Below are positions 3,438 through 33,765 of a stretch of DNA of 37,689 nt, piece after piece. This stretch comes from Octopus bimaculoides (lineage: Eukaryota): contig NC_069009.1 in NCBI RefSeq assembly GCF_001194135.2, positions 4,124,819 to 4,162,507 of the forward strand, written 5' to 3'. The notes beneath the pieces were generated by a model that had not been told where the DNA came from, made no database searches, and saw nothing but the letters and a program-made list of their open reading frames with translations. The translations under genes were made by a program, and so were the position numbers. Numbering within the stretch: the stretch's first letter is position 1; each line of letters starts with the position of its first letter.

Positions 3438-3489
<52 letters not shown>

Positions 3490-3496
3490 ATATGTA

Positions 3497-3531
<35 letters not shown>
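3438..3531. repeat. (TA)n/(TATG) microsatellite next to assembly gap 3307-3437
   Basis: Direct reading. Confidence 0.95.
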
Positions 3532-3536
<5 letters not shown>

Positions 3537-3636
3537 CTACAAGCAAGAGAAGGTTAATTAGTAAGAAAAATTATAATTAAGAAAATAGTCATAACCGAGG
3601 GATCGAGCAAGAGTCGTCTTCCCTAGTTTAAGACTA

Positions 3637-3745
3637 ACGCATGCGCATTATAAATATATAGTGTTACTTTCCGGATTTGGCGCTTTATTTTCTTTTAATC
3701 CACTCCACGCATAGTTTATAACAATATCCTGTACTAAACAGTTGT
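3637..3745 (+). promoter_or_regulatory. Putative promoter and non-coding exon 1 of ZNF gene 1; intron 3746-4418
   Basis: CGCATGCGCA (NRF1-like), TTATAAATA, TTCCGG (ETS core), donor GTAAGT at 3746, and acceptor TTTTCCATTTTCAG ending at 4418 whose downstream sequence is homologous to the 5'UTR of gene 2. Inferred; no transcript data. Confidence 0.55.
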
Positions 3746-7389: not shown

Positions 7390-7579
7390 TATCTCTTTTA
7401 CTTATTTCAGTCATTTGACTGCGGCCATGCTGGAGCACCGCCTTTAGTCGAGCATATCGACCCCGGGACTTATTCTTTGTAAGCCTAGTACTTATTCTAT
7501 TGGTCTCTTTCACTGAACCGCTAAGTGACGGGGGCATAAACACACCAGCATCGATTATCAAGTTATGATAGGGGGACAA

Positions 7580-7620
<41 letters not shown>

Positions 7621-7786
7621 TATGACGGGCTTCTTTTAGTTTCCGTCTACCAAATCCACTCACAAGGCTTTGGTCGGCCCGAGGCTATAGTAGAAGACAC
7701 TTGCCCAAGATGCCACGCAGTGGGACTGAACCAGGAACCATGTGGTTGGTAAGCAAGCTACTTACCATACAACCACTCCTGCGCCT
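7390..7786 (-). mobile_element. Full-length tRNA-derived SINE, family 2
   Basis: Reverse complement of 8718-9097: head GGCGCAGG.GTGG, internal TA/TG microsatellite, tail GTGCTCCAGCATGGCCGCAGTCAAATGACTGAAA. Confidence 0.9.
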
Positions 7787-7956
7787 AACTGTTTAACTTT
7801 TTTCATTCTAATCCACCTGAGATCACACCTACTTCTAACAATACTTACTTCCTCATTTAAAGTGTTCAGTGTTAGTCTTCCATCAAAATTTCATATAAGT
7901 TTATATACGAAACACCAGTTTAATAATTACTAAGTTATTTTACTAAAAAGAAATTG

Positions 7957-8717: not shown

Positions 8718-9097
8718 GGCGCAGGAGTGGCTGTGGTAAGTAGCTTGCTTACTAACCACATAGTTCCGGGTTCAGTCCCACTGTGTGGCATCTTGGGCAA
8801 ATGTCTTCTACTATAGCCTCGGGCCAACCAAAGCCTTGTGAGTGGATTTGGTAGACGGAAACTGAAAGAAGCCCGTCGTATATATATATATATATGTGTG
8901 TGTGTCTGTTTGTCCCCCTAGCATTGCTTGACAAACGATGCTGGTGTGTTTATGTCCCTGTCACTTAGTGGTTCGGCAAAAGAGACCGATAGAATAAGTA
9001 CTAGGTTTACAAAGAATAAGTCCCGGGGTCTATTTGCTCGACTAAAAGGCGGTGCTCCAGCATGGCCGCAGTCAAATGACTGAAACGAGTAAAAGAG
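8718..9097 (+). mobile_element. Full-length tRNA-derived SINE, family 2
   Basis: GGCGCAGGAGTGGCTGTGGTAAG (A box), CGGGTTCAGTCCC (B box), central microsatellite, tail ending GACTGAAACGAGTAAAAGAG. Confidence 0.9.
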
Positions 9098-10379
9098 ATT
9101 CAACTATGAAAAGTGAGAGAATCATGGTTGTCCATGTGACTCACAAATCATAGATTTGTGAGTCTGAAATTATTCCAGAAGAGTAGAAGTATAGAGGGAT
9201 TATACAACATGTGAATATAACAAGATGGATCTGCTCTCAATACCATGGAAGGTACACTGTCAGATATTCCCAAGTCACAATCATGATGAAATGGTAAAAA
9301 TGATGTGCAGAACAAAGCTTCATCTAATGGTGCAATATAATGAAGTATGTGTTATTTACAATCAGTTTCATAAACTTTGGTACAATCTGTAGTGTAGTCA
9401 GAATCTAGGATTTTCCTCCCACTCCCTGCATTTTCTTTACCATTTATTTTTTTTCCCCCGTATTTTCAATGAATATGAGCTCCAAACTAGTTGTAAACAA
9501 TTAGCTTTGTAGAAAAAGTGGGGTTGGAAAGATCATTGTAGTTTCGCATTTGGTGAAGGGGTTGGATTGCAAGCAAAGTTTCTTGATTATTGGAATAGAG
9601 TAAACCAGTAAACATTGTTTTGCTGTGTTGAACTGGTCAGAAGTGTGACAGAGTGACACTGATTTTTCTCATTCAAACAGTTTTCGAACCTGGCTTGGTT
9701 ATTTACAGCAATTCTTGGGCTGCCTACAGGAATCTAAACAGTTTAAGGTATAAACAATTTACTATAAATCATTCTGAACATTTCGTTGTCAGCACACAAA
9801 ACACTGAACGATTTCGGTGAGATTTGAATGAGTGGATTAGATGTTTGGTTAGAATATCTATACCAGTACCTGGCCAGATATTTATTGAACATTTCAGTTA
9901 AAAATAACAACAACAAAATCTGCTACACCAATTTTTATTGAGGCAGCCAACTTATATCTCCATCTACCCCACTTGCAGATCAGTAAAGTACTACAAATCC
10001 GGATACCGAATATACACAAGTCTGCGGTTTGTTAGGAGGTTAGATTAGTTGATACCACAAGAAAATGAAAAACGGAAAAAGTTCATCTTTTCTTTTGGAA
10101 AACACATTTAAAGTAGGAATGGTACATTTTTTTGTTTTTTAAACACATTCACAAGTAGGTGAACTGCTCATTATTTTACGGATATATATATATATACAAA
10201 TTAATGCCTAGTCCCCGGGCGCTAATTCATATAATTGTAATATACGATAATTTAGAAAATAGAGAAGTTTTCAGAATTTCATTGATTTTTTTTTTTAATC
10301 TGTTTTAAGTCTAAATTTTCAGAAATAACGTTTTGTTGTTTGTGTAACAGCTTCTATACAGAAATTAAATCCATTTCGT

Positions 10380-10531
10380 TTTTGTGTGTTTCCGAGTCGG
10401 TTTTTATATTTTCTGTTGTCAAATATTACTTCCGGTTTGATCACTCCATAAAATTCGCGACTCTTTTTTTGTGATTCTGGAAGGATATTTGACAGAATCG
10501 CTGTAAATACAGATTTATATACCAATAAAAG
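10380..10531 (+). promoter_or_regulatory. Putative promoter and non-coding exon 1 of ZNF gene 2; intron 10532-12979
   Basis: ACTTCCGG at 10428, strong donor AAG|GTAAGA at 10531/10532, acceptor TTATTTCAG ending at 12979. The block is homologous to 36420-36660. Confidence 0.55.
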
Positions 10532-10643
10532 GTAAGATATATACTATATTATTTACTAAAATTAAGGTGAAAATTGATAACTGGAAACTTTTAAATGTTT
10601 CTGATCGATATTCTATTTACTATCACTGATTATCTTAAATTAA

Positions 10644-10967
10644 TGGTGGAGATGGAGTATATGTAATCTGGGTATACCCCCACTTTTAAATTTTTTTTTT
10701 TTTTTACGGAATCCTATGTTTCAGACCATGGAGAATCCGATTCTGGAAANNNNNNNNNNNNNNNNNNNNNNNNNNNNNNNNNNNNNNNNNNNNNNNNNNN
10801 NNNNNNNNNNNNNNNNNNNNNNNNNNNNNNNNNNNNNNNNNNNNNNNNNNNNNNNNNNNNNNNNNNNGAATCGGAATCTCCATAGCCTAAAACGTGGGAT
10901 TCCGTAAAAAAAATTAATAAATAAGGGGGGGGGGGAGGTTCAGATTACATATAGTCCATCTCTACCA
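10644..10967. repeat. Imperfect ~100-bp inverted repeat spanning an assembly gap (foldback/MITE-like)
   Basis: 10644-10743 (TGGTGGAGATGGAGTATATGTAATCTG..TTACGGAATCC..GGAGAATCCGATTC) is the imperfect reverse complement of 10868-10967. Confidence 0.8.
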
Positions 10968-11234
10968 AATTAATAATTAGAGCGATCTTCGCTTTAAAAG
11001 TAAAATAATTCTCGTTAGTATTCGACTGATCTCAGAAATGGACCACAAAGTTTATTTCGAAATTGTCCTAGAAATTATTTGAGTGATGTTTGTGTTATGG
11101 TGATGTTTTAACCGTCTTGTTTAAAGGAAACGTGAAATCATCGTAGAAACTAAAGTCATGCATCACAATTACCACCGTGGTCATTAATTAGTAAGACGAC
11201 CACTCTTCTCTTCGCATGATCGAATGCAACAACC

Positions 11235-11789
11235 TTGGCACTATCCTGGTATTAGCTGTCTGTCTGTCTATCTATCTCTCTATCACTCGTCCATCTTCGT
11301 TTGTTTCCGTAGAATTTATCAAATTAGAAAAAAAATTTTTTGGCTACTTCCATCACACGAGGGGCATATTTTTGGGGTATTTAAAAGTCCATGTCTCTTA
11401 AGCCAATTAATACTATTTTCTGTTGTAGCGGTGGCGATGGCAATATCGCGGTGATTAATTCCAACTTTGGATTACGCGTGGTGGTGGTGGTGCTGATTGG
11501 TTTTTTAAAACAATGAATAATGCAAAAATTTATTTATTTATAAAGTTTAAACTGAATTTCATTTGTTTAAATTCTACGGAAACGCATTTTCTAATTTGAT
11601 AAATTCTACGGAAACAAACGAAGGTGGACGAGTGATAGATAGATAGAGAGAGAGGGAAAGAGACAGACAGACAGATAGCTCCGGCCAGTCAGTAGCCAAA
11701 GAAACAGATTTCAACTCAAACCAGCAGTAACATTCCTTGTTTGGATTTTTCTACTTTCATTTCTGACAGCTAATACCATGACAGTGCCA
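11235..11789. repeat. Inverted-repeat element (TIR-like) in intron 1 of ZNF gene 2
   Basis: 11279-11331 vs 11587-11639 are reverse complements with 1 mismatch in 53 bp; outer arms 11235-11260 vs 11765-11789. A homologous arm lies at 37385-37530. Confidence 0.8.
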
Positions 11790-12061
11790 CAACCTTAAGT
11801 GTGACACTGTGTTTATCTCTCATACAAGTGTTGCGGTATTATTACCAATCACCATTGACCAAAAGAAATTTGGCTGTTGTTTCTAGCACATCGTACGACC
11901 ACCTTCCTTGTTTCATTGTCATTCTAACATGTATTGATGTTTTTCTGTATTTTTCTTCCATTAAACACGTTTATGCTATTAAAAAAAAACTTCCATTTAT
12001 GATTTTGTCAACCCCACTCCCTCACCCCCATTTCTTTCTGTTTATAATTTTAAAATATTGT

Positions 12062-12110
12062 AGGCGTAGGAGTGGCTGTGTGGTAAGTAGCTTTCATATG
12101 CTGAACCATG
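12062..12110 (+). mobile_element. SINE family 2 head fragment
   Basis: GGCGTAGGAGTGGCTGTGTGGTAAGTAGCTT. Confidence 0.7.
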
Positions 12111-12744
12111 GCTAATTTGCAAAGAACATGCCACCTCATTGATGGTTGCTCTCAAAAACAAAACAGTCTCTCAAACTTGTTGAATCTCTATGTTACTAGT
12201 GGAGGTTGAGGGGCCTCTTGCTCCCTCTTCATGATGCTTGTCCAGCCATTTTAAAACTTCTTGATCTTCTCATACACACTTCCACATGTTGGGGTGCTGT
12301 GCCCATATTGTAAAACTTGCAATGAATTTCAGCACCTGACATACCTTCAGACCACAGAAATCAGATCCTTAATCCTTGTTATTCCTTGGGGCACACTGCC
12401 AGCAGAACAGCGATCTTTACCCTTTAACATAAAGAAAACCGGAGCAATCACGGTCAAACTCTAGTTACATAACCACAAGAGTACCACCCTAAAGATAATT
12501 TTGGTGAAAATGCAGATAAATTTTTGACTTTTTGTAATGTAAATCTTTAAAAGTAATTTGCAAAACTTGTACTTGACACAATCACAATATTTGAAGACAG
12601 ATTTTCTTAAAAATTATTCTAAAACTTTTAGAAACACTGAATGACATGAACCTTTTGTGTAGTTTTGTTTTTCTAAGATTTTTTAAATAGTAAATAATTT
12701 TTACAAAAATCTTTTCCAATATAATATAGACCCACACTTGGGCC

Positions 12745-12885
12745 TTTTCTCACTTTCTGTCTACCGAATCCACTCAAAAGGCTTTGGTTAGCCCAGAGTG
12801 GAAGACCCAAGGTCTCTCACAGTGGGACTGAACCTGACACCATTTGATGTGAAGGAAATTTCTTAAGCACACAGCCATATCTGCA
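12745..12885 (-). mobile_element. SINE family 2, degraded 5' half
   Basis: TTTCTGTCTACCGAATCCACTCA..GGCTTTGG..CAGTGGGACTGAACC..CACAGCC. Confidence 0.65.
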
Positions 12886-13395
12886 CCAATCTTTATAAAA
12901 GTAGTAAAATGTCTTATGTTATGTCTTTATGTCTTCATTATCTTCTCCATCTTATGCTGTTGTTTCTCTATTATTTCAGATCATCAGAAGACACTGGCAC
13001 CAAAGAATTGTTTACATCATCATCAGTATTGATCATCTTTTAAATTCCAAAGCAAGATGTTAAACATAATTGATATAAACCTTTTTGTATAAATCTATGA
13101 GGAATTCCTGTGAAATATTGCTTCTCAACTGAAATTTATAGCAACATTTCTCTAGCACACTGGAGTTTCTACAAATGGATTTTACAAACAAATTAAAGTT
13201 GGTTTTATTTACAAAAGAAACTTGCTGAATCTGCAAGCATCAATGAAGACTGCGATGTTTGGAAGTACAAAAGTTGAAATGTTTGTAAGAGATGAACTAA
13301 AAAAGTTGGAACCAAGAAACCTATCTTCATATTGTTGTGAAAGAACGAAAATGAATAGTGTTAGAGATTTGAAGATTTAATTTTTGCAAAAAACA

Positions 13396-14784
13396 ATGTC
13401 AAGGAAAATTAGAAAACCATATCACTGTGATATCTGTGGCAGATTGTTTTCTCAAAGAGCTATCTTAACTATACACGTACGTATTCATACAGGAGAGAAA
13501 CCATATCACTGTGATATCTGTGGTAAAACATTCTCTCAAAGTAGTAGCTTAACTTCTCACGAGCGTAGTCATACTGGAGAGAAACCATATCACTGTGATA
13601 TCTGTGGTAAGTTATTCTCTCAGAGACACAATATAGCTAGACATAAACGTATTCATACAGGAGAGAAACCATACAACTGTGATAGCTGTGAAAAATCATT
13701 TGCTGGAAATAATGACTTGATGAAACACAAACGTGTTCACACAGGAGAGAAAGCATATCACTGTGATATCTGTGGTAAATCATTCTCTCAAAGTTGTAAC
13801 TTATCTTCTCACAAGCGTACTCATACAGGAGAGAAACCTTATCACTGTGATGTCTGTGGTAAATCATTCTCTCGATGCGATAGCTTAATTAAACACAAAC
13901 GTATTCATACAGGAGAAAAACCATATCACTGTGATATCTGCGGTAAATCATTTTCTGAGACGGGTTGTTTAGCTTCTCACAAACGTTCTCACACGGGAGA
14001 AAAGCCATACCACTGTGATGTCTGTGGTAAATCATTCTCTGGAACTGGTTGTTTAACTTCTCACAAACGTATTCACACAGGTGAGAAGCCATATCGCTGT
14101 GATATCTGTGGTAAATCATTCTCTCTAAGTCGTAGTTTAACTTCTCACAAGCGTACTCATACAGGAGAGAAACCTTATCACTGTGATGTCTGTGGTAAAT
14201 CATTCTCTCGATGTGATAGTTTAACTAAACACCATCGTATTCATACAGGAGAAAAGCCATATCCTTGTGATATCTGTGGTAAATCATTTTCTGAGACAGG
14301 TTGTTTAACTTCTCACAAACGTATTCATACAGGAGAGAAACCTTATCACTGTGATATCTGTGGTAAATCATTCTCTCAAAGTAGCAGCTTAACTTCTCAC
14401 AAGCATAGTCATACAGGAGAGAAGCCATATCACTGTGATATCTGTGGTAAGGCGTTCTCTCAGAAACATCACATAACTAGACATAAACGTATTCACACAG
14501 GAGAGAAACCATACAACTGTGATAGCTGTGAAAAATCATTTGCTGGAAATAATGACTTGATTAAACACAAACGTGTTCACACAGGAGAGAAAGCATATCA
14601 CTGTGATATCTGTGGTAAATCATTCTCTCAAAGTAGTAATTTATCTTCTCACAAACGCACTCATACAGGAGAGAAACCTTATTGCTGCAATATCTGTGGT
14701 ATATCGTTCTCTGAAAGTAATGCCTTCATTAGACACAAACTTATTCACTCTGTAGGGAAGTCTTATCCCCGACATTTGTCGTAA
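13396..14784 (+). CDS. C2H2 zinc-finger protein (ZNF gene 2), 16 fingers, starting at the first in-frame ATG after an in-frame stop
   Basis: 16 periodic C2H2 units. The ORF track starts at TTG 13384, but the first ATG is 13396. An in-frame 45-codon ORF (13243-13380) precedes it. Confidence 0.85.
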
Positions 14785-14970
14785 ATCATTCTCATAGATA
14801 GGTAACTTAAGTAGACACAATCATATTCACACACGAGGAAAACCATATTAGTGTGATATGTTGTAAATCATTGATACAAAGAGATGATTAATTAAACACA
14901 AATGAATTTTTACAGAAGAAAAACCATGTCTCTTTGATATCTGGTAAATCATTCTCTAAGAAATATACCA
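14785..14970 (+). pseudogene. About 2-3 decayed zinc fingers in the 3'UTR of ZNF gene 2
   Basis: Residual AAATCATTCTC, AGACACAATCATATTCAC, AAACCATAT..TGTGATAT and GAAGAAAAACCAT motifs with indels and stops. Confidence 0.7.
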
Positions 14971-15741
14971 TAACTTGTGAATTTTTCTGTTGTAAACAAC
15001 AGGCAATGGTTCTGTAATTTCTTGCTGAACAGACTGCAGAGGTGATCTGTTTATTGTGATCAAATGTTTGTGCTGTACATTAGCTCACTTCCTCCATCAA
15101 ATCAATATTGCTTGGACAGATGCAAAATGTGTCACTCATAGTTGTCAAGTGTCTTGCTCAAGAATCCAATGATCAGTCCAGGAATTGAAACCACAATCAA
15201 AAGATTGTGGATGTGACACCCTGAGTACTAAGCCATTCACCACCACAAATACTGTAACTAGATAGAAATGCATTCATACACAAAATAAATTAATATCACT
15301 GCTAGATCTGTCATAAATCATTCACTGAGACAGTAATTTAGCTACATCATCATTGCTTTAATGTCTCCTTCTCCACACTTGAGTGGGTCAGACACTATTC
15401 ATTGAAGCAGATAATTCCTGGCCAGCTGCCTCTTCTGTTACCAGCCCTCTCTCCAAGGAAGGTGATATTTCCCCATGACTGGACATGTTTCCATGGAAGA
15501 TTGGAAAGGAAAGACACAGGTTGCATGATGGTGATACGTGTTTATAATCATCACATGATGTGAAATCAAAGCGACACAAACATGCACACGTGGATATGTA
15601 TATACTTGAGAAGATCAGTTCAAAGAAATATTTGTGAAGGTTTGCCATTGCTGTTGGTTGTAGAATCAGTTTAGAGTTGTCTCTCTTGGTATCTGCTGCT
15701 GAACAAGTTTGAAATGCTTCCAGAGGGTGTTTTGTGCTGAA

Positions 15742-19665: not shown

Positions 19666-20102
19666 TTACTGTTTTTTTGATCCTGTGAAAGCTGAAATAA
19701 CCTGATATGGTTTGCTCTGATACTTGCGACTCTCCATATTTACATTTTCAAATTTATTCTTGCTAAGAACCTTCATATAATATTCCACATCAATATTGCC
19801 ATATTTCAGTAAACCAAATTTTTTTGAAAGTTTTACCTTTTCATACTGAATTGTCGTTATCATTAATGAGTTTGGCTTTAAACAACGATGCAGCTCTTGA
19901 ATACATTTGTCAAAATCAGGCCAAAAATAAAAAGAATTGCAGTGAAAAATCCGATCAAAGGAATTTGTTTCAAATGGCATTTCCATAACACTTCCAAGAT
20001 GTAGTTCCACCTGTTTATTACTGATGCCTTCACTCAGTCGTTTACTTGTTAATTCAAACATATAAGGCGATAAGTCAAGGCCATGTAATTTCCCTTTGCC
20101 AC
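19666..20102 (-). CDS. Class I SAM-dependent methyltransferase, coding exon 3 of 3
   Basis: Acceptor TTCTTTCAATTTAG|GT at 20103/20102, phase 1. Encodes GKLHGLDLSPYM..MPFETNSFDRIFHCNSFYFWPD..ELHRCLKP (methyltransferase post-I, II and III-like motifs); stop at 19666-19668. Confidence 0.9.
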
Positions 20103-20141
20103 CTAAATTGAAAGAAGAAAATATATTAGTACATACATTAT

Positions 20142-20236
20142 GGCTGTTTGGTAAGAAGCTTGCTTCCTAACCATATGGTTCTGGGTTCAGTCTAGTATAG
20201 CCTTGGGCTGACCAAAGATTTGTGAGTGGATTTGTA
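20142..20236 (+). mobile_element. SINE family 2, degraded head fragment
   Basis: GGCTGTTTGGTAAGAAGCTTGCTT..GGGTTCAGTC..TTGTGAGTGGATTTG. Confidence 0.65.
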
Positions 20237-20329
20237 TATTTTATATACAGACATTGAACTTTGGGGCAGTCCTCTGGTGAACTCTCCAAGCCAGGCCAAC
20301 AGGGAAGATATATATGTTATGATCTGCTG

Positions 20330-21170
20330 GATGAGTAATGTCAGTGTGCATACATGACAGAGTGTAAGTGCCCCGAGAGAAAAGTTGGGCATAAGAAGCA
20401 TCAAATGTGGTGTGCAAGAGAGGCGATTGCATGCACTTGTATGGTTATGTGTTATGTATGGATGAGGACAGCTGTGTGAGGAAGTGCCACTCCCTAACTG
20501 TGGAAGGAACCTGTGGAAGAGGTAGACCCAGGAAGGCATGGGATGAGGTGGTGAAGCATGACCTTTGAACATTGGGCCTCACAGAGGCAATGACAGGAGA
20601 CCGAGACCTTTGGAGATATGTTGTGATTGAGAAGACCTGGAAACTAAAGTGAGATCGCAGCCATGCCTGTCTGACCCAGTTAAGAGTACCCCTGATGTGC
20701 CATATGATATGATATGCTTGAGAAGACCTGTTGAGTAAAGTAAAACCAATATCGTAACTGGCCTGTGCCCTCTGACTGGCTCCTGTGCTGGCAGCACGTA
20801 AAAAGCACCATCCAAACGTGGCTGATGTCAGTACCCCCTGACTGGCTCTCATGCCAGTGGTACATATAAAGCACCGACTGAACGTGGCCGATGCCAGTAC
20901 CACTTGACTAGCTCCTGTGCCGGTGGCATATAAAAAGCATTATCTAAACATGATCGATGCCAGGCCCACCTGACTGGCTCCTCTGCTGGTAGCACGTAAA
21001 AAGCACCCACTACACTCTCGGAGTGGTTGGCATTAGGAAGGACATCCAGCTGTAGAAATATTAGATCAGCCTGGAGTCTGGTGCAGCCACTGGCTTTCCA
21101 GACCTCAGTCAAACCGTCCAACCCATGCCAGCTTGGAAAATGGACGTTAAACGATGATGATGATGATGAC
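20330..21170 (+). mobile_element. RTE-type LINE 3' portion (decayed ORF2 C-terminus, repeat-containing 3'UTR, (GAT)n tail)
   Basis: Homologous to 26520-26880 (GTGCAAGAGA..GGTAGACCCAGGAAG = GRPRKTW motif); ends ACGTTAAACGATGATGATG. Confidence 0.8.
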
Positions 21171-21845
21171 TACAAAAGCATCACAAAACTGTCAGTCAGA
21201 GCTTCACGTTTCCGTTTGTCGGACAATTGTGATCTAGTCTTGACCCAACTGTTTGATGAGTGGAAACGTGAAGCTCTGAGTAACAGTTTTGTGGTGTTTT
21301 TGCAGCTTNNNNNNNNNNNNNNNNNNNNNNNNNNNNNNNNNNNNNNNNNNNNNNNNNNNNNNNNNNNNNNNNNNNNNNNNNNNNNNNNNNNNNNNNNNNN
21401 NNNNNNNNNNNNNNNNNNNNNNNNNNNNNNNNNNNNNNNNNNNNNNNNNNNNNNNNNNNNNNNNNNNNNNNNNNNNNNNNNNNNNNNNNNNNNNNNNNNN
21501 NNGTGGCCGTTTTCGTGCGGGTGACACGTAAAAGCACCCACTACACTCTCTGAGTGGTTGGCGTTAGGAAGGGCATCCAGCTGTAGAAACTCTGCCAAAT
21601 CAGATTGGAGCCTGGTGTTGCCATCCGGTTTCACCAGTCCTCAGTCAAATCGTCCAACCCATGCTAAGCATGGAAAGCGGACGTTAAACGATGATGATGA
21701 TGATGACTACAAAAGCATCACAAAACTGTCAGTCAGAGCTTCACGTTTCCGTTTGTCGGACAATTGTGATCTAGTCTTGACCCAACTGTTTGATGAGTGG
21801 AAACGTGAAGCTCTGAGTAACAGTTTTGTGGTGTTTTTGCAGCTT
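21171..21845. repeat. 138-bp direct duplication (21171-21308 = 21708-21845), each copy a ~130-bp hairpin with 41-bp imperfect arms
   Basis: Identical sequence on both sides of a gap plus an RTE tail. Arms CAAAAGCATCACAAAACTG..GAGCTTCACGTTTCC / GGAAACGTGAAGCTC..CAGTTTTGTGGTGTTTTTG. Confidence 0.8.
21503..21707 (+). mobile_element. RTE 3' end (young subfamily), 5' part lost in gap
   Basis: Near-identical to the reverse complement of 23271-23470. Confidence 0.85.
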
Positions 21846-21949
21846 TAATAAAAATAGGTGTGTGTGTGTGTGTATACACATAAATATTTACATATATATA
21901 GTAGATGTCAAGACTGTGATGGTAGTGACAGTGGTGTATGATGGTGGTC

Positions 21950-22085
21950 AGGCTTCTTTCAGTTTCCATCTACAAAATCCACTCTCAAGGCTTTGGTTGG
22001 TCGGGGGTTATAGCAGAAGACACATGTATAAAAGTGCCAAACATTGGAACTGAACCTGAAACCATGTGGTTGGGAAGCAAACTTT
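21950..22085 (-). mobile_element. SINE family 2, degraded 5' half
   Basis: CTTCTTTCAGTTTCC.TCTAC.AAATCCACTC..GAAGACAC..GAACTGAACC..ACCATGTGGTTGG. Confidence 0.65.
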
Positions 22086-22138
22086 CCAACTATTCAATCA
22101 TAAATACCTTAATACAATAATTTTTTTATCCAAATTAC

Positions 22139-22274
22139 CTTTGATCTTCTGATAGGCTGCTTCTAGACCCAAGCCAGGGCCAAAACCAACTTCAAGAACA
22201 TAATAGTCAGGTTTAATGTTACAATGTTCAACTGCAGCTATTTCTACTTTTCCATTTATCCTCAGGAGAAAGTG
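22139..22274 (-). CDS. SAM methyltransferase, coding exon 2 of 3 (motif I)
   Basis: ATTTTTCAG|CAC..AAAG|GTAATT. 136 bp encoding HFLLRINGKVEIAAVEHCNIKPDYYVLEVGFGPGLGLEAAYQKIK with glycine-rich motif VLEVGFGPG; phase matches exon 3. Confidence 0.9.
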
Positions 22275-22679
22275 CTGAAAAATATTCAGAAATTAATAAT
22301 ATTAGATTCTTACTTACTTGTACTTGTGCAGCTACTCACTTGGAGTTGGTTGAGTTCACTCCAACCAATGAGATCACCACATCTCTCACCATTGTTGACC
22401 ACATCCAAGGAAATTTGCCAAATGCCCCACTGGGTGAGCAAGCATGTCAGATAACAAAGGCATTGTAAACCATACTCGTCATTTGCTGTTGCGGTGTAGA
22501 ATTCATGTTCAAAGTTTCAAGTGAGAATACAAGTTCACATGTGGCCCCTTGGTTACATGCATACACACTTTGGGATAGTGTGATCCATAGCGGCTCATCT
22601 TGCAATCGATTGCCAACCATTGCAGATGATTCACTAGCCAAGTCACCTCCTCTCCACCTTACCTCTTGGATGCATCACA

Positions 22680-22726
<47 letters not shown>

Positions 22727-22731
22727 CAAAC

Positions 22732-22800
22732 CTTAACGAATCTTCCGGCAATGGATTTTTGTGGTAGACGCAAATTTTTGGCAAATGTAGTTAGAAGCAT
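22732..22800 (-). CDS. SAM methyltransferase, coding exon 1 of 3
   Basis: ATG at 22800, 23 codons MLLTTFAKNLRLPQKSIAGRFVK, donor AAG|GTTTGC, phase 0. The spliced CDS is 69+136+437=642 nt = 213 aa plus stop, with no disruptions. Confidence 0.8.
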
Positions 22801-23270: not shown

Positions 23271-23636
23271 CATCATCATCGTTTAACGTCCGCTTTCCAT
23301 GCTAGCATGGGTTGGACGATTTGACTGAGGACTGGTGAAACCGGATGGCAACACCAGGCTCCAGTCTGATTTGGCAGAGTTTCTACAGCTGGATGCCCTT
23401 CCTAACGCCAACCACTCAGAGAGTGTAGTGGGTGCTTTTACGTGTCACCCGCACGAAAACGGCCACGCTCGAAATGGTGTCTTTTATGTGCCACCCGCAC
23501 AAGCCAGTCCAGGGGCACTGGCAACGATCTCGCTCGAAAATCCTACAGGAGCCAGTCAGGCGGTACTGGCAACGGCCACGCTCAAAATGGTGCATCTCAT
23601 GTGCCACCCGCACAAGAACCAGTCCAGGGGCACTGA
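23271..23636 (-). mobile_element. RTE 3' end, 5'-truncated
   Basis: CATCATCATCGTTTAACGTCCGC.. tail plus repeat-unit UTR. Confidence 0.85.
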
Positions 23637-23858
23637 TTAATATTATCTCAGTTTAAAAAAACCTTCGACAATGTAAATATGTTAATAGTTACCATGGGTA
23701 GCAAAAATTACACAAAAAACCAGGATATCACACCCGTTTTATAGGTAGCGATACTAAGTTGAAGTGATGAATTTTGAGTAGATATGAATAATAATAATAA
23801 ATGGAGCATGCGTTTTGCTCCATTTATTGTTATTATTCATATATATATATATATATAT

Positions 23859-23940
23859 ACTCTTTACTCTTTTACTTGTTTCAGTCATGTGACTGCGGCC
23901 ATGCTGGAGCACCTCCTTTAATCGAGCAAATCGACCCCCA
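23859..23940 (-). mobile_element. SINE family 2 3' tail fragment abutting the LINE
   Basis: Reverse complement GGGGGTCGATTTGCTCG..GTGCTCCAGCATGGCCGCAGTCACATGACTGAAACAAGTAAAAGAG. Confidence 0.85.
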
Positions 23941-24956
23941 ACGGCCTGGATAGCCACCCTTGCTAGCTATGCAGATGATACAAAAGTCTCGCAGAAAATA
24001 CAGAACTCTGGCGATGTTGCACGTCTGCAGTAGGAGTTAGACTCAATTTACAGATGGGCTGAGGATAACAATATGCAGTTTAATGCTGAAAAATTCCAAG
24101 CCCTGCGCCTCCAGCGTCCAAAACTGAATATGAAACTTACAAGATGCACTGGTCCACAGGGAATTACAATACTAGAGCCTAAATCAGTGAGGGACCTGGG
24201 CATCGACATGAGTGATGATACCTCTTTGCAAGTGCACATTACCTGGATGGTGACAAAGTGCAGAAGACTGGCTGGATGGATCCTGAGAACATTCAGAACC
24301 AGAGAACAGGAAACCATGATAGTCCTCTGGAGGACATTCGTCTTCAGCCGCCTGGATTACTGCTCACAGCTGTGGTCACCCACCAGTCTGAAATTAACAG
24401 CAGACCTTGAGGCAATCCAGAGAAGATTCACAAAGAAGATTGTCTCTTTGCAACTGCTCAGCTACTGGGAAAGGCTGAAACAGCTAAGACTCTACTCCCT
24501 GGAGAGAAGGCGGGAGAGGTATGCAGTAATATACATCTGGAAGATCCTGGAAGGAATTGTGCCAAATTTTGGCATTGAAAGCTACACCAATGCTAGAACG
24601 GGATGACACTGCACAGTGCTAAAGATCCCATCAATGCCATCGCGCTTCAGGACCAGTTACTGCAACAGCCTGGGTTTCAGGGGCCCACAGCTTTTTAATA
24701 TTCTCCCAAAGAACCTGAGGAACCTGCACAAAGTGGATGTAGGTGTTTTCAAATCAAGGGTGGACCTCTTCCTGTTGAGAGTCCCAGATGAACCTACCTC
24801 ACGGCGAGAGATGCAAATGAGGGTAGCTACATCAAACTCCATTCTTCACCAAGTGACACATATTAGAGGAGGCGCTCAGTAATAAAAGTGTAGCAAACGG
24901 CAGTGCTCCAGCATGGCCACAGCTCCGAGCTGAAACTACAACAACAACAACAACAA
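23941..24956 (+). mobile_element. CR1/L2-group LINE, 5'-truncated RT C-terminus plus 3'UTR and (CAA)n tail
   Basis: YADD at 23968, then MQFNAEKF, VRDLGI, LDYCSQLWSP, LYSLERRRER and PDEPT motifs. Only two in-frame stops (24031, 24604). Confidence 0.9.
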
Positions 24957-25137
24957 AAAAGAAGCAACAAAACAGTTGCGTAGTCAAAGTAAATTTTTTT
25001 TTTTTTAACATTTAACAGCAAGGGAGTTCTTTGGCAAGTTCTTTTCTTTCTTCTTTATTTTTCTTTTGAATCATTTACATTTAACGGCAACAAAGTTCTC
25101 TTCAAATATTTAATAACCCAAAAATTCTTTCATTTAC

Positions 25138-25260
25138 CTTTGTGAACTTCCACAATCCTGGCTAGCAGCAGCATCAACTTCCCACTACATCAACTTGCCA
25201 ATTCCTTCCAATCGTCCGTGTTTCTCCCGCTTTGTCTGTCTCTCTGCCCCTGTCTATCTT
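25138..25260 (-). other. Putative non-coding first exon of the methyltransferase gene
   Basis: Strong minus-strand donor CAAAG|GTAAAT at 25138/25137, next to a CpG-richer island at 25200-25340. Inferred only. Confidence 0.4.
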
Positions 25261-25540
25261 TGTCCTCGCAACTGAGAGCTACCTGTATATATTAGGTCAT
25301 CCAGTGAGAAAGTTAGGTATACCGTACGTGACAGTGTGTGTTTTCATTCGAAACATTGTCTTTTTAATCTCTCTGTGACCGTAAAGAACAAGAGATCATG
25401 TACCTTCAGTCATAAACAACCGTGCTTCTTGACAAAACAATGGAAATACCGCTGGCCTGAACAACTAGAGAACCGTTTCGAACCCAGCTAATGTTTTTTT
25501 TATATTTTGTGTTCGTAACAATATGTATGTAACATTATTT

Positions 25541-25915
25541 ACATTATTTACATTTGACGGATATTTGTCCTCATATTGTTTGTTGTTAACACAACGTTTC
25601 GGCTGATATACCCTCCAGCCTTCATCAGGTGTCACGGGCATATGGCGTAGTGGTTAAGAGCGCAGGCTACTAACCCCAAGGTTCCGAGTTCGATTCACGG
25701 CAGCGACCTGATTAATAATAGTAATAATAATAATAATAACATAATAATAGTAACATCGTTAGGAATGAGAACCCAGGTTCGAAATTTCCCCAAGACACCT
25801 GACGAAGGCTGGAGGGTATATCAGCCGAAACGTGTTAACAACAAACAAGATGAGGACAAATATCCGTCAAATGTAAATAATGTTAATAATTCCTCATCTC
25901 TTAAATATAGAACTG
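25541..25915 (+). mobile_element. Composite element: tRNA-derived head, (AAT)n and Penelope-like tail, preceded by an inverted copy of the tail
   Basis: Arms 25541-25633 and 25794-25883 are near-perfect reverse complements (2 substitutions plus a 3-bp indel). Head at 25635-25708 has A box TGGCGTAGTGG and B box GAGTTCGATTC. Confidence 0.8.
25588..25633 (-). ncRNA. Minimal type I hammerhead ribozyme motif (Penelope type)
   Basis: Minus strand reads GACAC-CTGATGA-A-GGCTG(GAGGGTATAT)CAGCC-GAAAC-GTT-GTGTT: helix I GACAC/GTGTT, core CUGAUGA..GAAA, 5-bp helix II, loopless palindromic helix III AACGTT, cleavage triplet GUU. Activity untested. Confidence 0.65.
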
Positions 25916-25926
25916 TAATATGTATG

Positions 25927-25971
<45 letters not shown>

Positions 25972-26010
25972 GTGTGTGTGTTTGTATATATATATATATA
26001 TATATATATA

Positions 26011-26885
26011 GCAAAATCCAAAGTCATAGTAAGTAGGAAGGCAGACAAGTCACAAACCCCCTCAGGTAGATGGCCCTGCTCAATCTGTAGAAAAGGTGTA
26101 GGTAGAAACTCCATAAGGTGCACCCAGTATAAGCTTTGGACTTACAAAAGGTGCAGCAGCATCAAAAGAAGGTTAACAGAGAAACTATCCTTTGTATGTG
26201 GGAGATGCACAGGCGTAATAAATGCTGGGCAGGTGCAGAAAATAGACTCCATCAACTGCCAGGGAAGCAGGCTAGAGGTAGGAGATAGATTTTGGTATCT
26301 AGGCAACCAGGTTAGTAGTGGAGGTGGATGTTCTGTGAGCGTAGTTGTGAGAATAAGATTAGGTTAGGCAAAATTCAGAGAGCTCCTACGCCTGCTAGCA
26401 GCAAAGGGCCTCTCTCAGAGCGAAAGGCAAATTGTTTGATGTCTGTGTGCGGACAGCAATGCTACATAGCAGTGAAACATGGGCTTCAACAGTCAAGGAC
26501 ATGCATAGGCTTGAAAGAAATGAAGCTGGTATGCTTTGTTGGATGTGCAATGTCAGTGTGCATGTTCCACAGAGTGTAAGCATCTTGAAAGTAAACTTAG
26601 GCATAAGAGGAACCAGATGTAGTGTGCAAGAGAAGCAACTGCACTGGTATGGTTATGTGATGCATAAGGACGAGGACAGCTGTATAAAGAAGTGCCGATC
26701 ATTAACTGTGGAGGGAACCTGTGTTAGAGGTAGACCCAGGAAGACATGGGACAAGGTGATGAAGCATGATCTTTAAAACTTGAACCTCACAGAGACAATG
26801 ACTAGTGACCGAGACCTTTGGCGATATGCTCTGCTTAAGAGGATCCATCAAGTCAAGTGCACCCATGCTGGTGGTACATAAGAAA
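26011..26885 (+). mobile_element. RTE-type LINE ORF2 3' part, decayed, with a PHD-like finger inside the RT domain
   Basis: KSKV, then CSIC..CTQY..YKRC..CGRC (26077-26208), FWYLG, AMLHSSETW and GRPRKTW, with frameshifts and stops. Confidence 0.85.
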
Positions 26886-27925
26886 ATCATCAAGTGTTGG
26901 GCCTCTTGGAGGCAAAGTGGCTGAGTTCCTTTTGAGAAGAAACTGGAGAAGGCACTTGCTCTTGGACAGTAAGGTTCCTCAATTATCCCTAGAGGTCATC
27001 TCATATTGGGAGAGCTACATCTCTATCAACTCCACCATTTTTTAGCCTTTTTATACTATGTATATGTCCCTTCCTTTTCATTGTATTTTGTGTATATTTA
27101 CATTTTTGATTTATTAATTTTTTAAATAACTATTTTATCATTACATGTAAACACCCACACTTCTAAGCTGTATTTGTTTTACTTTCAACACAATCTCAAA
27201 CCAAGTGACTTACCTGGCAAGTATACCTCCTATTTACATAATTTGGATCCAATATTTAGCAAGATGTCACCATATGCAATCAGAACTTTAGTTAGAATAT
27301 ATAATGATGATTCCGTGACAACTAATTTTTTTTTTGCTAAACCACATAGCTTTATCTATTTCTCTGTAATTTTGTAACATGTCTTATCTTATGAGATTTC
27401 AGCTTATCTTATTATTTATAACCTTACACATCAAAACTTCTCTATTCATTTTATATTTTATTTTTATTTTTTTTATTTTAAATTTATTGGTAGGAGAAGA
27501 GTAAAACTTGCTTAAGCCGTGTAAAAAAATAGAAAAAAACTGTTATTGTTATATACAATTATATACTAGTTGCAAAAGAAACACCTCTCACTACTTCTTT
27601 TATATTATTTTTATCTTTGACTTAATCCAGATTATTTTTCAGATATCTAATGTTTAAACATAAGAAATCATGATTCTGCATGTGTGTGTGTGTGTAGATA
27701 GATATATATATAATTAAAAAGTAATGTAATAATACATTTATGGCAGATATATCATAAACAATTAACAATTATTTATGAATATATGACCAAACATGTTATC
27801 ATAAAATACATAGAAAAATGTGTTTATAATTATGAACAAGTCACAATTAGAACTAAGAGGGTTTCAAAAACCCTTACATGTTTAGAAATAGCAGTCAAAA
27901 ACCACTATAAAGCCACTCTTATCAC

Positions 27926-28243
27926 TCACAGTTGTATGGCTTCTCTCCTGTACGAATATGTTTATATCTAAATATGTGATGTCTCTGAGAGAATGACTAT
28001 GCTTGTGAGAAGAAAAATTACTACTTTGAAAGAATGATTTACCACAGATATCACAGGGGTATGGTTTTTCTCCAGTGTGAGAACGTTTGTGAGAAGCTAA
28101 ACAACCTGTCTCAGAAAATGATTTACCACAGATATCACAGGGATATGGCTTTTCTTCTGTATGAATACGATGGTGTTTAGTTAAACTATCACATTGAGAG
28201 AAAGATTTACCACAGACATCACAGTGATATGGTGTCTCTCCTG
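27926..28243 (-). pseudogene. Orphan C2H2 zinc-finger fragment (~3.5 fingers) related to ZNF gene 2
   Basis: [52 protein letters not shown].. matches gene 2 fingers 10/11/7. No leader or 5'UTR; contains an internal deletion/frameshift. Confidence 0.9.
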
Positions 28244-28386
28244 TCTGCGGGTGACATGACATATAAAATCCACAACTTAAAAATAAAAGGATGTCTTCTA
28301 TCAATTTTTATCTATAGGAATATTTTCCTGAAGAGACAAATGAGACCCTTAATAGGTTCCTAACACTGAAATAGCAATAGAAAATT

Positions 28387-28800
28387 CATCATCATCATCA
28401 TCATTGTTTAACGTCCGCTTTCCATGCTGGCATGGGTTGGACATTTTGACTGAGGACTGGCGAACCGAATGGCTGCACCAGGCTCCAATCTGATCTGGCA
28501 GAGTTTCTACAGCTGGATGCCCTTCCTAACGCCAACCACTCCAAGAGTGTAGTGGGTACTTTTACGTTCCCCCAGCACAAGGGCCAGTCAGGCGGTACTG
28601 GCCATGCTCAAAATGTCTTTTATGTACCACCTGCACAGAAGCCAGTCCAGTGGCACTGGCAATGTTATTTTTCATGTGCCACCAGCACAAGTGCCAGTAA
28701 GGTGACACTGGTAACGATCACACTCGAATGGTGCTTTTTGTGTGCCATCGGCATGGGAGCCAGTCAGTGGCCCTCACAATGATCACGCTCGGATGGTGCT
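28387..28800 (-). mobile_element. RTE 3' end, 5'-truncated (older subfamily)
   Basis: (CAT)n followed by GTTTAACGTCCGCTTTCCATGC and UTR repeat units. Confidence 0.85.
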
Positions 28801-30787
28801 TTTAACATTGTGGATTTTATACGTCATGTCACCCGCAGATAGCATTTATTGTGAGGAGATACAATATGAATGATAATAGTGGCTTTAGTGTAGTTTTTGA
28901 CTGCTATTTCTAAACATGTAAGGGTTTTTGAAACCCTTTTAGTTATAATTGTGACTTGTTCATATTATAAACACTCTTCTTCACATATATATATATAACA
29001 AGTTGAAAGAAACGAGAAGTCAAAGGAATTAAACTTCTACATTAATTTATTATATACATTTTTGGCATTTATAATACATTTAGAAATAAAGTCATTTCGT
29101 TGTAGCGAATTACAACTTATATTTTATACTAACTAATCTTTCATTTTAGTTCACGATTCAATATTGTCGGATTTGAGTATTGAACATGGCATAAATATTA
29201 GCCAATACTCAAGAGGGTGAGTGTCGTGGATTTGAGTGGCATCCAACGATCACTGGAGAGTTTGCCGAAAATCAGGGTTTTTATAACTACTTCCTAGAAC
29301 CATACCCCGTGAAAAACTTCTTCAACGAAGTTCAGAATTCATATATGGGCAGTAATTTTTAACCAATGAGAAATCGATAATTTCTCATGTTCGGGCAAAC
29401 GAACTTACGTTCTCTCTCCGCCTCTAATGAGTTTGCTACACTTCTATTCCTCCGGATTCATGTCTTTGAACCTTTACTTATTTGGCCTTTCTTTGACTCC
29501 ATTATTGTTCTGTCTCTTTTTCTCTTCGTTGCTGCCCATTTGGCTCTCTGTTCTTGTTTTTCTTCTGTTCGCCCCGTTATTGATATGTAACTCTTGTGTT
29601 TGCAGGTCCTTTCCTTGTCTTTGTACACAGCCCATTTTTCGGGGTTTGTTTTTGCGAAGTTCTTGATATATCTAGAGGTATGACACAAAGTGTCTACTGC
29701 CTGAGAACTACCTTTCTCTGTTGTTTTTTCAAGAGGCAACTTTCTCTGGTGAAGTCTGGATGTTTTCTAGTCAAACAAAATAACAAGATGATCCATCTCA
29801 GTTTGGCTTTAGTCTCTCATATTAGCCTCTTAGATCAGTCTCTCATACAGCTGGAGAACAACACCATCAGCAACACAGATGTGAGGAAGAAGCATGAGTT
29901 AGTATCTACATATATAATGCAGAAGTGAAGCAAAAGCATGCAGAAGTGGGTACAAAGATGAGTAAGATAGTAAGCAGCTAGTTAGTTTCACACACAAGCC
30001 CACAACCAAGGTCTGTAAAATACAGAATAAGAAAATGTGTATAGTATGTGCCAGAAGCATAGTTTAATGCACACATACATACACAGAATGGCCAATATTC
30101 TTAATTATTTGTGGATGTTAAAAACATGTCCTTTCCTAAACGAGAAGATCAAGATTTATTGGCAGCCTTGTGAATACCAATAACAATTGTTGTAGATGAG
30201 CTGTGCCTTTCTAAAAATTCTTTCCAATAAGATACATATATTTAAGCAAAAATATGCCATCCAGTGCTGTGTTCTTGGCAACAGAAGAGCAATGTCTAGA
30301 TGACCTTAATTTTAGATGAAGATCACCATAAAGATGTTTAGTAAACAACTCAAAAAACAGAAAATAGACATCATTCATGTATTGATATTATCAAAACACC
30401 ATCCCACATAAAATATAAAATTAAGATAGCATGCTATAGTAGGTTTACACAATACAGATTCCCAATATATTAAACAGCCATTCAGGGAAGGACATTTTTT
30501 AACCAGAACAAATCTTTACAAAAATGTGATTGCTCCTCAAATGTTTCCTTGTGGGGTTCTTAGTTGGGGACACATACAAACATGATATGAAATAAGTTTG
30601 AATTATAGCATGAAATGTGGTGACCAGCTTCACAATAATACTCTGTTCAGGAAAGGATATTTTTTAACAAACAACTTAACACAACAATTGAATTTACAGT
30701 TTTTTAACATGTTGGTACTAAAAGGCACAACTTAAATGTATTTGCCTTCCAATGTAGAAGCAATGACATGTTTTATTGTAGAAATAC

Positions 30788-31428
30788 TTACTCTTTTACT
30801 CGTTTCAGTCTTTTGACTGTGGCCATGCTGGAGCACCGCCTTTTAGTCGAGCAAATCGACCCCAGGACTTATTCTTTAGAAGCCTAGTACTTATTCTATC
30901 GATCTCTTTTGCCGAACCGCTAAGTTACGGGGACATAAACACACCAGCATCTGTTGTCAAGCGATGTTGGGGGGACAAACACAAACACATACAAACATAC
31001 ACACACACACATCATCATCATCATCATCATCGTTTAACGTCCGCTTTCCATGCTAGCATGGGTTGGACGATTTGACTGAGGACTGGTGAAACCGGATGGC
31101 AACACCANNNNNNNNNNNNNNNNNNNNNNNNNNNNNNNNNNNNNNNNNNNNNNNNNNNNNNNNNNNNNNNNNNNNNNCACCCGCACGAAAACGGCCACGC
31201 TCGAAATGGTGTCTTTTATGTGCCACCCGCACAAGCCAGTCCAGGATACATATATACATATATACGACGGGCTTCTTTCAGTTTCCGTCTACCAAATCCA
31301 CTCACAAGGCTTTGGTCGGCCCGAGGCTATAGTAGAAGACACTTGCCCAAGATGCCGTGCAGTGGGACTGAACCCGGGACCATGTGGTTGGTAAGCTAGC
31401 TACTTACCACACAGCCACTCCTACGCCT
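30788..31428 (-). mobile_element. Full-length SINE family 2 split by a nested RTE fragment
   Basis: Tail half 30788-30990 and head half 31265-31428 are colinear with 7390-7786. Confidence 0.85.
31010..31245 (-). mobile_element. RTE 3' end nested in the central microsatellite of the SINE (contains gap)
   Basis: (CAT)n GTTTAACGTCCGC..; identical to the corresponding parts of 23271-23510 on either side of the gap. Confidence 0.85.
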
Positions 31429-32502
31429 ATATATTTTCCCTAATATTACTTCATAATAACAAAGTTGGGAATGGAGTTCTCTTGCTGTTAATAATGTATA
31501 CTAATTTGAGATTAAAGAAGTGGTCTAGAAATGGGAATTGAGAAATTATCACCATAAGTTTTTCATGATTTTGTTGAAAATAATGTTAGACTCATTCTGT
31601 AAACTGTGTAAGGTAAAGTAGCCATGAAGCAGTTTGGTCAAGTATGGCTTTGGTCAACATTTGTTTACTGTTATCTGCTATTCTTGGAAAATGTAAGTTT
31701 CATTTATAACCACCTTTCCCATGAAATTGACCTTAAGAAGTTTGCTTCACAACCACATGGTTTCAGGTTGTTACTGCATGGTACCTTGGGTAAGCATCTT
31801 CTTTCATAGCCCTGGGCCAACCAATACCTTTTTAAACTAAAGATGATTTTATTGCTATATTGGACTGGAAATTCACTTCACTGAATTTTGAGCCAAAACC
31901 ACAGATATAAATGTAAAAAAAAAAAAACTTTATTTGTTACAGTTGGAGGTTCACTTTGTAAAGCCTTCTATCACAGATAATTCTGGTTCAATTCTTCATA
32001 AGAGATTTCTAAAGCATTTCACTTTTCCAGCCCATCAACTCATAAATAAGAGGATCCAACAGACATAGAAATGGTGCTGTCATCATCATTTTAACATTTT
32101 AACATTTACATAATAATTATCTTCCACTTGTTACATATTTCAACACTAGAAGGCCTCACATATTTAGCTTACCCTGACCTTTTTCAGAAGGAACAATTTT
32201 CCAAAGATCTCCCACTCAAGTGCAAGAGAATTTTTCCTACATATCACTTCCGTTCTGTTTGTAATAGGATTAATGAAAACATGGAAGTAATTCATGCAGA
32301 AGTTTGAATATTTGTATTACGTAATAAGAGTGTAGACGATGGTAGATAAGCAAGTACGTGATCCTATTTTCAGTCAATCAAATTTTGGTCTTTTGATTGA
32401 CTGAATTCATAGGAAAATATCAATATTCATAAAATAAAGCAATTTCCTTGACAAATATGAAGGACTTTATTTACCACAGCCTAAATTTTGACATTTACAC
32501 AA

Positions 32503-32739
<237 letters not shown>

Positions 32740-33765
32740 TCACAGCTTCTCTCCTGTATGAGTACGTTTGTGATTAGCTAGGTGATGACTTTGAGGAAAT
32801 GATTTACCACAGATATCACAGTGATATGGCTTCTCTCCGGTATGAGTACGTTTGTGAATAGCAATGTGTTGACTTTGAGAAAATGATTTACCACAAGTCT
32901 CGCAGTGATATGACTTCTCTCCGGTATGAATACGTTTGTGAGTAGCAATGTTTTGACTTCGAGAGAATGATTTACCACAAATCTCGCAGTGATATGGCTT
33001 CTCTCCAGTATGAATACGTTCATGTGCAATTAAGGAATGTTTATGAGAGAATGATTTACCACAGATATCACAGTGATATGGTTTCTTACCTGTATGAATA
33101 CGTTTGTGGTTAGTTAGGGTATAATTTGCAGAGAAAAATTTACCACAGATCTCACAGTGATATGGCTTCTCTCCAGTATGAATACGTTTGTGACTAGCAA
33201 TGTGATGCTTTCGAGAGAATGATTTACCACAGATTTCACAGTGATATGGCTTCTCTCCAGTATGAATAAGTTCATGTGAAATTAAGAGAGATCTTTGAGA
33301 GAACGATATACCACAGATTTCACACTGAAATGGTTTCTCTCCTGTATGAATATGTATGTGTACAGATAATTGACTGACACAAGCGAATGATTTATCACAG
33401 ATATCACATTGATATGGTTTCTGTCCAGTATGAATATGTTCATGTATAATTAAGGAATGTTTTTGAGAGAATGATTTACCACAGACATCACAGTGATAAG
33501 GTTTCTCTCCTGTATGAGTACGCTTGTGAGAAGATAAGTTACAACTTTGAGAGAATGATTTACCACAGATCTCACAGTGATATGGCTTCTGTCCTGTGTG
33601 AATACATCTGTGTCTGGTTAAGGCATTACTTGCAGAGAATGATTTACCACAGAATTCACAATGGTATGCTGTTTTACTTGTTCTTTTCTTCATACCATCA
33701 AGAGAATCAGTCCTTTTAGATTGCATTTCAACTTTAACCTCATCCTGACACAATTCACTTTCCAT
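32740..33765 (-). CDS. C2H2 zinc-finger protein (ZNF gene 3), 341 aa, 11 fingers; no effector domain
   Basis: ATG-initiated ORF with a 32-aa leader and 11 periodic fingers. The acceptor at 34190 (ATCTTATGCTGTTGTTT..ATTTCAG) is homologous to that of gene 2. Confidence 0.92.

Follow-up and report, generated by a model that had tools for sequence, protein, structure and literature searches.

A zinc-finger gene fragment confined to one arm of an old inverted duplication in Octopus bimaculoides

Within a cluster of C2H2 zinc-finger (ZNF) genes on chromosome CM046629.1 of Octopus bimaculoides (GCA_001194135.2), two short non-coding arms face each other in inverted orientation, and one of them is interrupted by about 0.3 kb of finger-coding sequence that its partner lacks. 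How did the arms come to differ, by gain of the ZNF cassette on one side or by its loss from the other, and does the resulting structure serve any purpose? We examined these questions in a stretch of 37,689 nucleotides (nt), the window, that spans approximately positions 4,124,819-4,162,507 of the chromosome and includes three long finger open reading frames (ORFs); unless otherwise indicated, coordinates are those of the window. The locus is most likely a neutral rearrangement scar, left at a fragile, AT-rich site of the ZNF cluster by template switching during replication or by break repair. As to the asymmetry itself, we give about an even chance to the cassette having been captured into the left arm, whether in the course of the duplication, through serial template switching, or shortly afterwards, through break repair.

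The same two inverted pairs, A and B (Table 1), were obtained by repeat finding, self-BLAST and global alignment, which bears out the asymmetric palindrome, with a cassette in one arm, that had been proposed in a sequence-only reading of the window. Copies of A align over 118 nt with 91.5% identity (BLAST E 1e-41) and those of B over 43 nt with 38/43 positions identical (88-91%; E 3e-10); both pairs are inverted and far beyond chance. Combined, the arms are identical at 146 of 159 aligned bases, with 13 mismatches and 2 gap columns, corresponding to a Jukes-Cantor (JC) distance of 0.087 +/- 0.024. The left arm reads B-ZNF-A on the minus strand and the right arm B'-short filler-A' on the plus strand, as that reading had described. 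Its sizes, 318 bp for the cassette and 27 bp for the counterpart, fall within the ambiguity of the boundaries: ZNF homology covers 322 nt by BLAST, or 27926-28244 by a finger-profile hidden Markov model (HMM), and the strictly private sequence amounts to 303 nt on the left (27938-28240) and 19 nt on the right. The junction microhomology it had noted is likewise present, as a 7-nt overlap on the B side (CAGA[C/T]AG) and a 12-nt overlap with 10 matching positions on the A side (ATACAA(C)T(G/A)TGA). Beyond the arms, the outer flanks show no significant continuation of the inverted repeat (p 0.65). A separate AT-rich, near-perfect palindrome of ~60 nt lies at 27735-27797, 23 nt to the left of arm A (CATTTATGGCAGATATATCATAAACAATTA / ACAATTATTTATGAATATATGACCAAACATG), its score being reached by none of 3000 shuffles (0/3000); this palindrome, together with the (TA)n/(TG)n tracts, gives the site a hairpin-prone appearance.

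Table 1. Positions of the arms, cassette and central sequences, followed by features of the surrounding cluster
Feature	Position	Strand	Remarks
Arm A, left copy	27820-27937	minus	118 nt; non-coding, not ZNF-derived; contains small hairpin GGGTTTCAAAAACCC
ZNF cassette	27926-28247 (BLAST, 322 nt); 27926-28244 (finger-profile HMM)	minus	gene-2-like C2H2 array fragment
Arm B, left copy	28241-28283	minus	43 nt
Spacer	28284-28385		102 nt; unique, non-palindromic; nhmmer finds only itself; no inverted partner
Non-long-terminal-repeat (non-LTR) retroposon	28386-28803	minus	5'-truncated 3' end: 3' untranslated region (UTR) of a long interspersed nuclear element (LINE), with 52-65-nt internal repeats
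Arm B', right copy	28800-28842	plus	starts at retroposon 5' junction
Right-only filler	28840-28858	plus	19 nt, TAGCATTTATTGTGAGGAG; occupies the place that the cassette has in the left arm
Arm A', right copy	28859-28974	plus	inverted partner of 27820-27937
(TA)n/(TG)n tracts	27681-27712 and 28985-28999		on both sides
Gene 2 segment closest to cassette within window	14158-14522	plus	13.4 kb away, opposite strand
ZNF gene 1	4728-6674	plus	long finger ORF
ZNF gene 2	ORF 13384-14784	plus	long finger ORF
ZNF gene 3	32740-33765	minus	long finger ORF
ZNF relics in window	2.1-2.6 kb, 15.25-15.34 kb, 32.47-32.74 kb		decayed fingers
~390-nt repeat family, window copies	7390-7781 and 8722-9099; further pieces 30788-31012, 31246-31429
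~390-nt repeat family, copies in O. sinensis locus L002	2656-3056 / 3246-3666, 7444-7833, 8842-9220
N-gaps in window	10750-10867, 21309-21502, 31108-31177

The cassette consists, in order, of a linker, three intact C2H2 fingers, a fourth finger bearing a 43-nt deletion at 27993/27994, a linker and the residues PYNC; three Pfam zf-C2H2 domains are recognized in its 140-codon open frame. It is collinear with gene 2 over the segment listed in Table 1, with 292 of 322 positions identical outside the deletion and perfect runs of ~40 nt common to both. The finger-profile HMM, built from 45 two-finger tiles of genes 1-3, matched only the cassette. Even at E 100 it recovered nothing from A, B, the right arm or the spacer, which gives the ZNF homology sharp limits and marks A and B as something other than decayed fingers. 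A candidate interpretation of arm A as a decayed fifth finger was rejected on the same absence of an HMM match. A and B are also not the normal flanks of a ZNF gene family, as far as the four available genes can tell: they flank neither the three ZNF genes of the window nor the single ZNF gene of the corresponding Octopus sinensis locus.

Both edges of the cassette interrupt the finger array. It starts with a full TGE.P linker, implying the loss of a preceding finger, and it stops five codons into a finger; cut internally at both edges, the cassette is a fragment rather than a natural gene end. Against gene 2 it shows a synonymous distance (dS) of 0.22 +/- 0.07 (12 changes in 62 sites) and a nonsynonymous distance (dN) of 0.074, hence a dN/dS of 0.33, values pointing to a gene-2-like paralog as the parent, one that was for some time subject to constraint. 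Gene 2 itself was not a recent donor, given this synonymous distance of 0.22 beside the 0.087 that separates the arms.

Part of the cassette has an exon-like appearance: its minus-strand stretch from 28244 to 27930 is open over 315 nt, a multiple of three, and is bounded by CAG on one side and GTGAGT on the other, with a T-rich tract upstream, all within the span of a minus-strand gene model described below. Non-consensus peptides from the gene 3 N-terminus, the passage from B to the cassette start and the passage from the cassette end into A found no match at E <= 1 in a database of 5.8 billion sequences, and the cassette is accordingly not part of any database protein, nor did this search reach a further translated copy of A or B; exact look-ups of the ORFs that span the junctions (140, 126 and 43 aa) returned no match on record. 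Two further candidates were discarded. A processed pseudogene (retrocopy) is not what the cassette represents, being an internal array fragment that ends after PYNC with no A-run, and the right arm is not a spliced or retro-copied left arm, since the plus strand lacks GT...AG boundaries. The cassette is a pseudogene fragment without sign of function.

Its origin in the left arm is the less settled matter. At each end, the private left-arm stretch and the ZNF homology stop within 4-12 nt of one another, and from this coincidence we infer, with the reserve already indicated, that the cassette was gained. The filler in the right arm also supports a gain, having no other copy in the window (at <=3 mismatches) and no cassette-derived signal (p 0.30 and 0.35 against the two cassette ends, 0.89 against the whole). 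On this reading, a non-coding segment of ~160 nt (B'-19 nt-A') would have been duplicated in inverted orientation at the AT-rich, hairpin-prone site flanked by (TA)n tracts. In the left arm, 19 nt would have given way to an internal stretch, 0.3 kb long, of a ZNF paralog resembling gene 2; this stretch was presumably copied by microhomology-mediated template switching or captured during double-strand-break repair, with use of the 7-nt and 12-nt overlaps at its two edges. A LINE 3' fragment occupies the centre, its 5' junction serving as the inner edge of the right arm.

Such a history resembles fork stalling and template switching, microhomology-mediated break-induced replication (FoSTeS/MMBIR) and templated or captured insertions at breaks in several respects: an inverted duplication with a short spacer, overlaps of 7-12 nt at both junctions, an extra segment whose limits are those of homology to a gene family found nearby in either orientation, and the loss of a few recipient bases. 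It departs from them in that no window gene is a donor of the right age, and in that the event is old (~9% divergence), with junctions mutated since. Known templated insertions by polymerase theta are usually much shorter than 300 nt, from which the cassette also differs.

The templated capture proposed from the sequence is thus reasonable insofar as the limits of the private stretch and of the ZNF homology coincide; that coincidence is, however, what a collapse of the array within the right arm would also leave. The finger array is an 84-nt tandem repeat, and slippage in the right arm would keep exactly both observed edges. Several other considerations weigh against a gain. Junction microhomology at both edges is equally expected under internal deletion, and deletions are far commoner than insertions of 300 nt that involve no transposon. 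Decayed ZNF relics are common in this cluster and occur also in O. sinensis (at 750-970 of locus L002). The dS of 0.22 +/- 0.07 between cassette and gene 2 exceeds the arm distance of 0.087, at a dN/dS of 0.33; gene 2, the best relative in the window, is less similar to the cassette than a donor of the arms' age should be, and the cassette may be older than the duplication.

Accordingly, the alternative of a right-arm deletion, already raised when the locus was first read, keeps a substantial minority share of our confidence. In this scenario a B-ZNF-A relic was duplicated whole, and the right-hand array later collapsed, whether by slippage between its first and last linkers or through end-joining that added filler, so that 7 + 12 nt of its edges survived. 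The corresponding linkers of the cassette are indeed direct repeats, with 22/26 positions identical and a separation of 293 nt, both cassette ends have matching counterparts in the right arm, CAGATAG and ATACAATATGA, and palindromes and tandem arrays are known to be prone to deletion; the frequency of ZNF relics in the cluster, and a cassette-to-gene-2 dS older than the arms, fit this course of events as well. Its difficulty lies in the product. A clean linker-to-linker collapse predicts a hybrid linker of 26-29 nt with GAGAGAAGCC in its middle, and this is absent from the right arm, where the observed middle, CATTTATTGTGAGGAG, is not significantly linker-like. Fitting it to such a product requires ~3-4 further indels within 30 nt, when the other 161 arm positions show 2 gap columns, and a deletion not due to slippage must strike both cassette edges by chance. 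The same tension appears when the locus is compared with contractions of tandem C2H2 arrays and the ZNF relics they leave: the 84-nt periodicity, the linkers as direct repeats and the relics in the window and the O. sinensis locus are shared, whereas the recognizable single linker that contraction should leave is missing from the right arm.

We next consider the age of the structure. Unique non-coding blocks aligned between the window and the O. sinensis locus give JC distances of 0.065-0.13, a range that includes the 0.087 between the arms. In a study of repeats, a JC distance of 0.09 from consensus was calibrated as ~25 million years (My), and the split of O. vulgaris and O. bimaculoides is cited there as 13-33 My (PMC13282606). 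Very roughly, then, the arms separated ~12 My ago, provided that no later homogenisation has occurred, and the duplication is about as old as the divergence of O. bimaculoides and O. sinensis. Arms this diverged represent neither a recent event nor an assembly duplicate.

The last point bears on local misassembly of what is a draft, gap-containing assembly, an explanation that we find scarcely credible. N-gaps do occur elsewhere in the window, and the comparison rests on one assembly of O. bimaculoides; gene 2 is on record in one NCBI assembly only, so that no independent contigs exist. The region between 27 and 30 kb, on the other hand, has no gaps, all junctions are unique sequence, and the arms are 8% divergent, which an artefactual fold-back would not be.

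The centre of the palindrome is occupied by the unique spacer and by a retroposon that ends in an (ATG)n tail, seen on the plus strand as (CAT)6 at 28389-28406. The tail end is common to at least six copies in the window, whose 5' ends vary, and the O. sinensis and O. vulgaris loci contain copies as well. One at 20315-21169 in the window is longer: it encodes an ORF2 C-terminus (GRGRPRKAW...DRDLWRY), probably RTE-like and matching a LINE at 26527-26843, followed by the repeat-bearing 3' UTR. Homology of the central retroposon to the other copies ends at ~28803 and that of B' starts at 28795-28800, the two abutting with a few bases of overlap; the right arm therefore does begin at the 5' truncation of a retroelement, as had been noticed from the sequence. 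No target-site duplication was seen around the central retroposon. In a simple reading, its insertion, perhaps with a small target deletion, sets the present inner edge of the right arm. Independently of the palindrome, the window holds two LINE copies of related families, at 20315-21169 and 23600-26900. The latter has ORF fragments at 24073-26776 and a 3' end unlike that of the former, whose type of 3' UTR is scattered through the window as 5'-truncated fragments.

A mobile origin for the entire 1.15-kb unit, as a transposon with long terminal inverted repeats (of foldback or Pack type) that picked up a gene fragment, is in our view very unlikely. Inverted termini are present, and other repeat families arranged as inverted pairs lie nearby, for example the first two copies of the ~390-nt family in Table 1. 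There is, however, no target-site duplication at 27819/27820 and 28974/28975, where the left flank ending in AGAAAAAT and the right flank beginning with TCTTCTTC share no direct repeat, and the gene fragment interrupts one arm instead of lying between the two. Pack-type transposons with terminal inverted repeats (Pack-MULE and similar) also associate gene fragments with inverted repeats; the present unit differs from them in these same features and in having no family of copies within the ~90 kb of octopus DNA compared. In this DNA, which comprises the window, O. sinensis locus L002 and a paralogous O. vulgaris locus (L003), nhmmer profiles of A and B found no further full copy, and the only second copy of either arm sequence is a 41-nt partial one.

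This sole relative, copy X, lies at 5231-5294 of the O. sinensis locus and resembles the right flank together with the outermost 41 nt of A (E 2e-4). Directly before it, at 5152-5231 of L002, stands a sequence that matches, less strongly, the left flank of the window palindrome (27695-27775); (TA)n tracts enclose both. Copy X differs by ~20% from each arm, whereas the arms differ from each other at 3 of the 41 positions; copy X is thus an outgroup to both arms, and the outer part of A predates the duplication. Its position is not collinear and its orientation is opposite to that in the window; it may be either an ortholog displaced by rearrangement or a low-copy paralog. The O. sinensis locus is collinear up to window position 27424, where alignment stops completely. 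A heavily decayed ZNF remnant (STGEKPFHC...) at 750-970 of this locus is separated by ~660 nt from the ortholog of window block 27167-27424. The cassette of O. bimaculoides is roughly as far from that block, yet the remnant has no detectable similarity to the cassette, A or B. The O. vulgaris match is a different, paralogous locus without A or B. A 29-mer from A gave 0 matches in a metagenome scan.

The structure has also been proposed to act, through a plus-strand transcript folding into a hairpin with the ZNF antisense sequence looped out, as a trans-acting guide for silencing or editing of the gene 2 family. In the fold predicted for a plus-strand RNA, A:A' and B:B' do form stems, from which the cassette protrudes as a large unpaired bulge; the ~40-nt perfect runs shared with gene 2 would make antisense pairing physically possible if a plus-strand transcript exists (a speculation), and the locus lies within the span of a gene model and so may be transcribed. 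The particulars run the other way. With the cassette outside the stem, the ZNF part is not double-stranded, and Dicer-type processing would yield RNAs derived from the arms and not from the ZNF sequence. Just one gene model extends across the locus; it belongs to the minus strand, and in that transcript the cassette would be sense, not antisense. The loop is filled by a retroposon, the arms have drifted at about the rate of the non-coding blocks that differ between O. bimaculoides and O. sinensis, the palindrome was not found in comparable O. sinensis sequence, and Rfam gave no match for the locus. Hairpin-RNA (hpRNA) and endogenous small-interfering-RNA (endo-siRNA) loci of Drosophila and plants are similar in having a long inverted repeat near a gene family and a predicted RNA fold, but a defining property of hpRNA loci is that target-gene sequence makes up both arms, whereas here the arms are unrelated to the ZNF genes and the fragment is an unpaired bulge in one arm. 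A functional hairpin-RNA gene acting on gene-2-like genes is accordingly most improbable, and we find no support for a silencing or editing-guide role. We also hold it to be extremely unlikely that the 315-nt, frame-preserving ZNF segment, copied in by the same single replicative template-switch event that would have built the duplication, is used as an alternative exon within an intron of the minus-strand model, or that the A:A'/B:B' stem recruits ADAR and forms an editing-dependent regulator of gene-2-like ZNF transcripts.

That gene model, of 224 residues with weak C2H2 hits, runs from window position 22891 to beyond 32800, crosses the palindrome and a LINE over ~10 kb, and does not include the gene 3 N-terminus. 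Its tiny last exon (...NPAIPETVI*) ends 90 nt upstream of a methyltransferase start codon, and the model is for this reason probably a chimeric prediction.

Around the palindrome, the cluster contains several decayed finger relics and many retroposon copies in addition to the three finger genes. Gene 2 has an internal tandem duplication of ~500 nt, or six fingers (13411-13907 against 14250-14747; 88.6% identity). Decayed finger-coding sequence runs ~270 nt past the stop codon of the gene 3 ORF (32468-32740), whereby gene 3 appears truncated by a premature stop. An exact look-up of the gene 3 ORF gave no match on record, a homology search with it was dominated by generic multi-finger proteins and yielded no ortholog, and the exact sequences of genes 1-3 have no entry in protein-cluster look-ups. 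A non-ZNF exon (Methyltransf_11) at 19666-20061, minus strand, is 100% identical to an O. bimaculoides methyltransferase; the gene is present once in the window (19666-22800) and as two inverted copies in the O. sinensis locus (10001-15089, plus; 23387-25089, minus). The ~390-nt repeat family occurs in both species as inverted pairs ~0.2-0.9 kb apart, and may represent either a foldback-like element or paired insertions.

For the present, the locus adds another structural scar to a cluster that is rich in repeats and rearranges rapidly, and offers no new handle on ZNF regulation or RNA editing. If capture into the left arm is the true course of events, the locus would document, with a date, a natural case in a cephalopod genome of coding DNA, a few hundred bases in length, having been copied into a break where hairpins readily form; it would likewise illustrate the way in which finger fragments are lost and dispersed from ZNF clusters.

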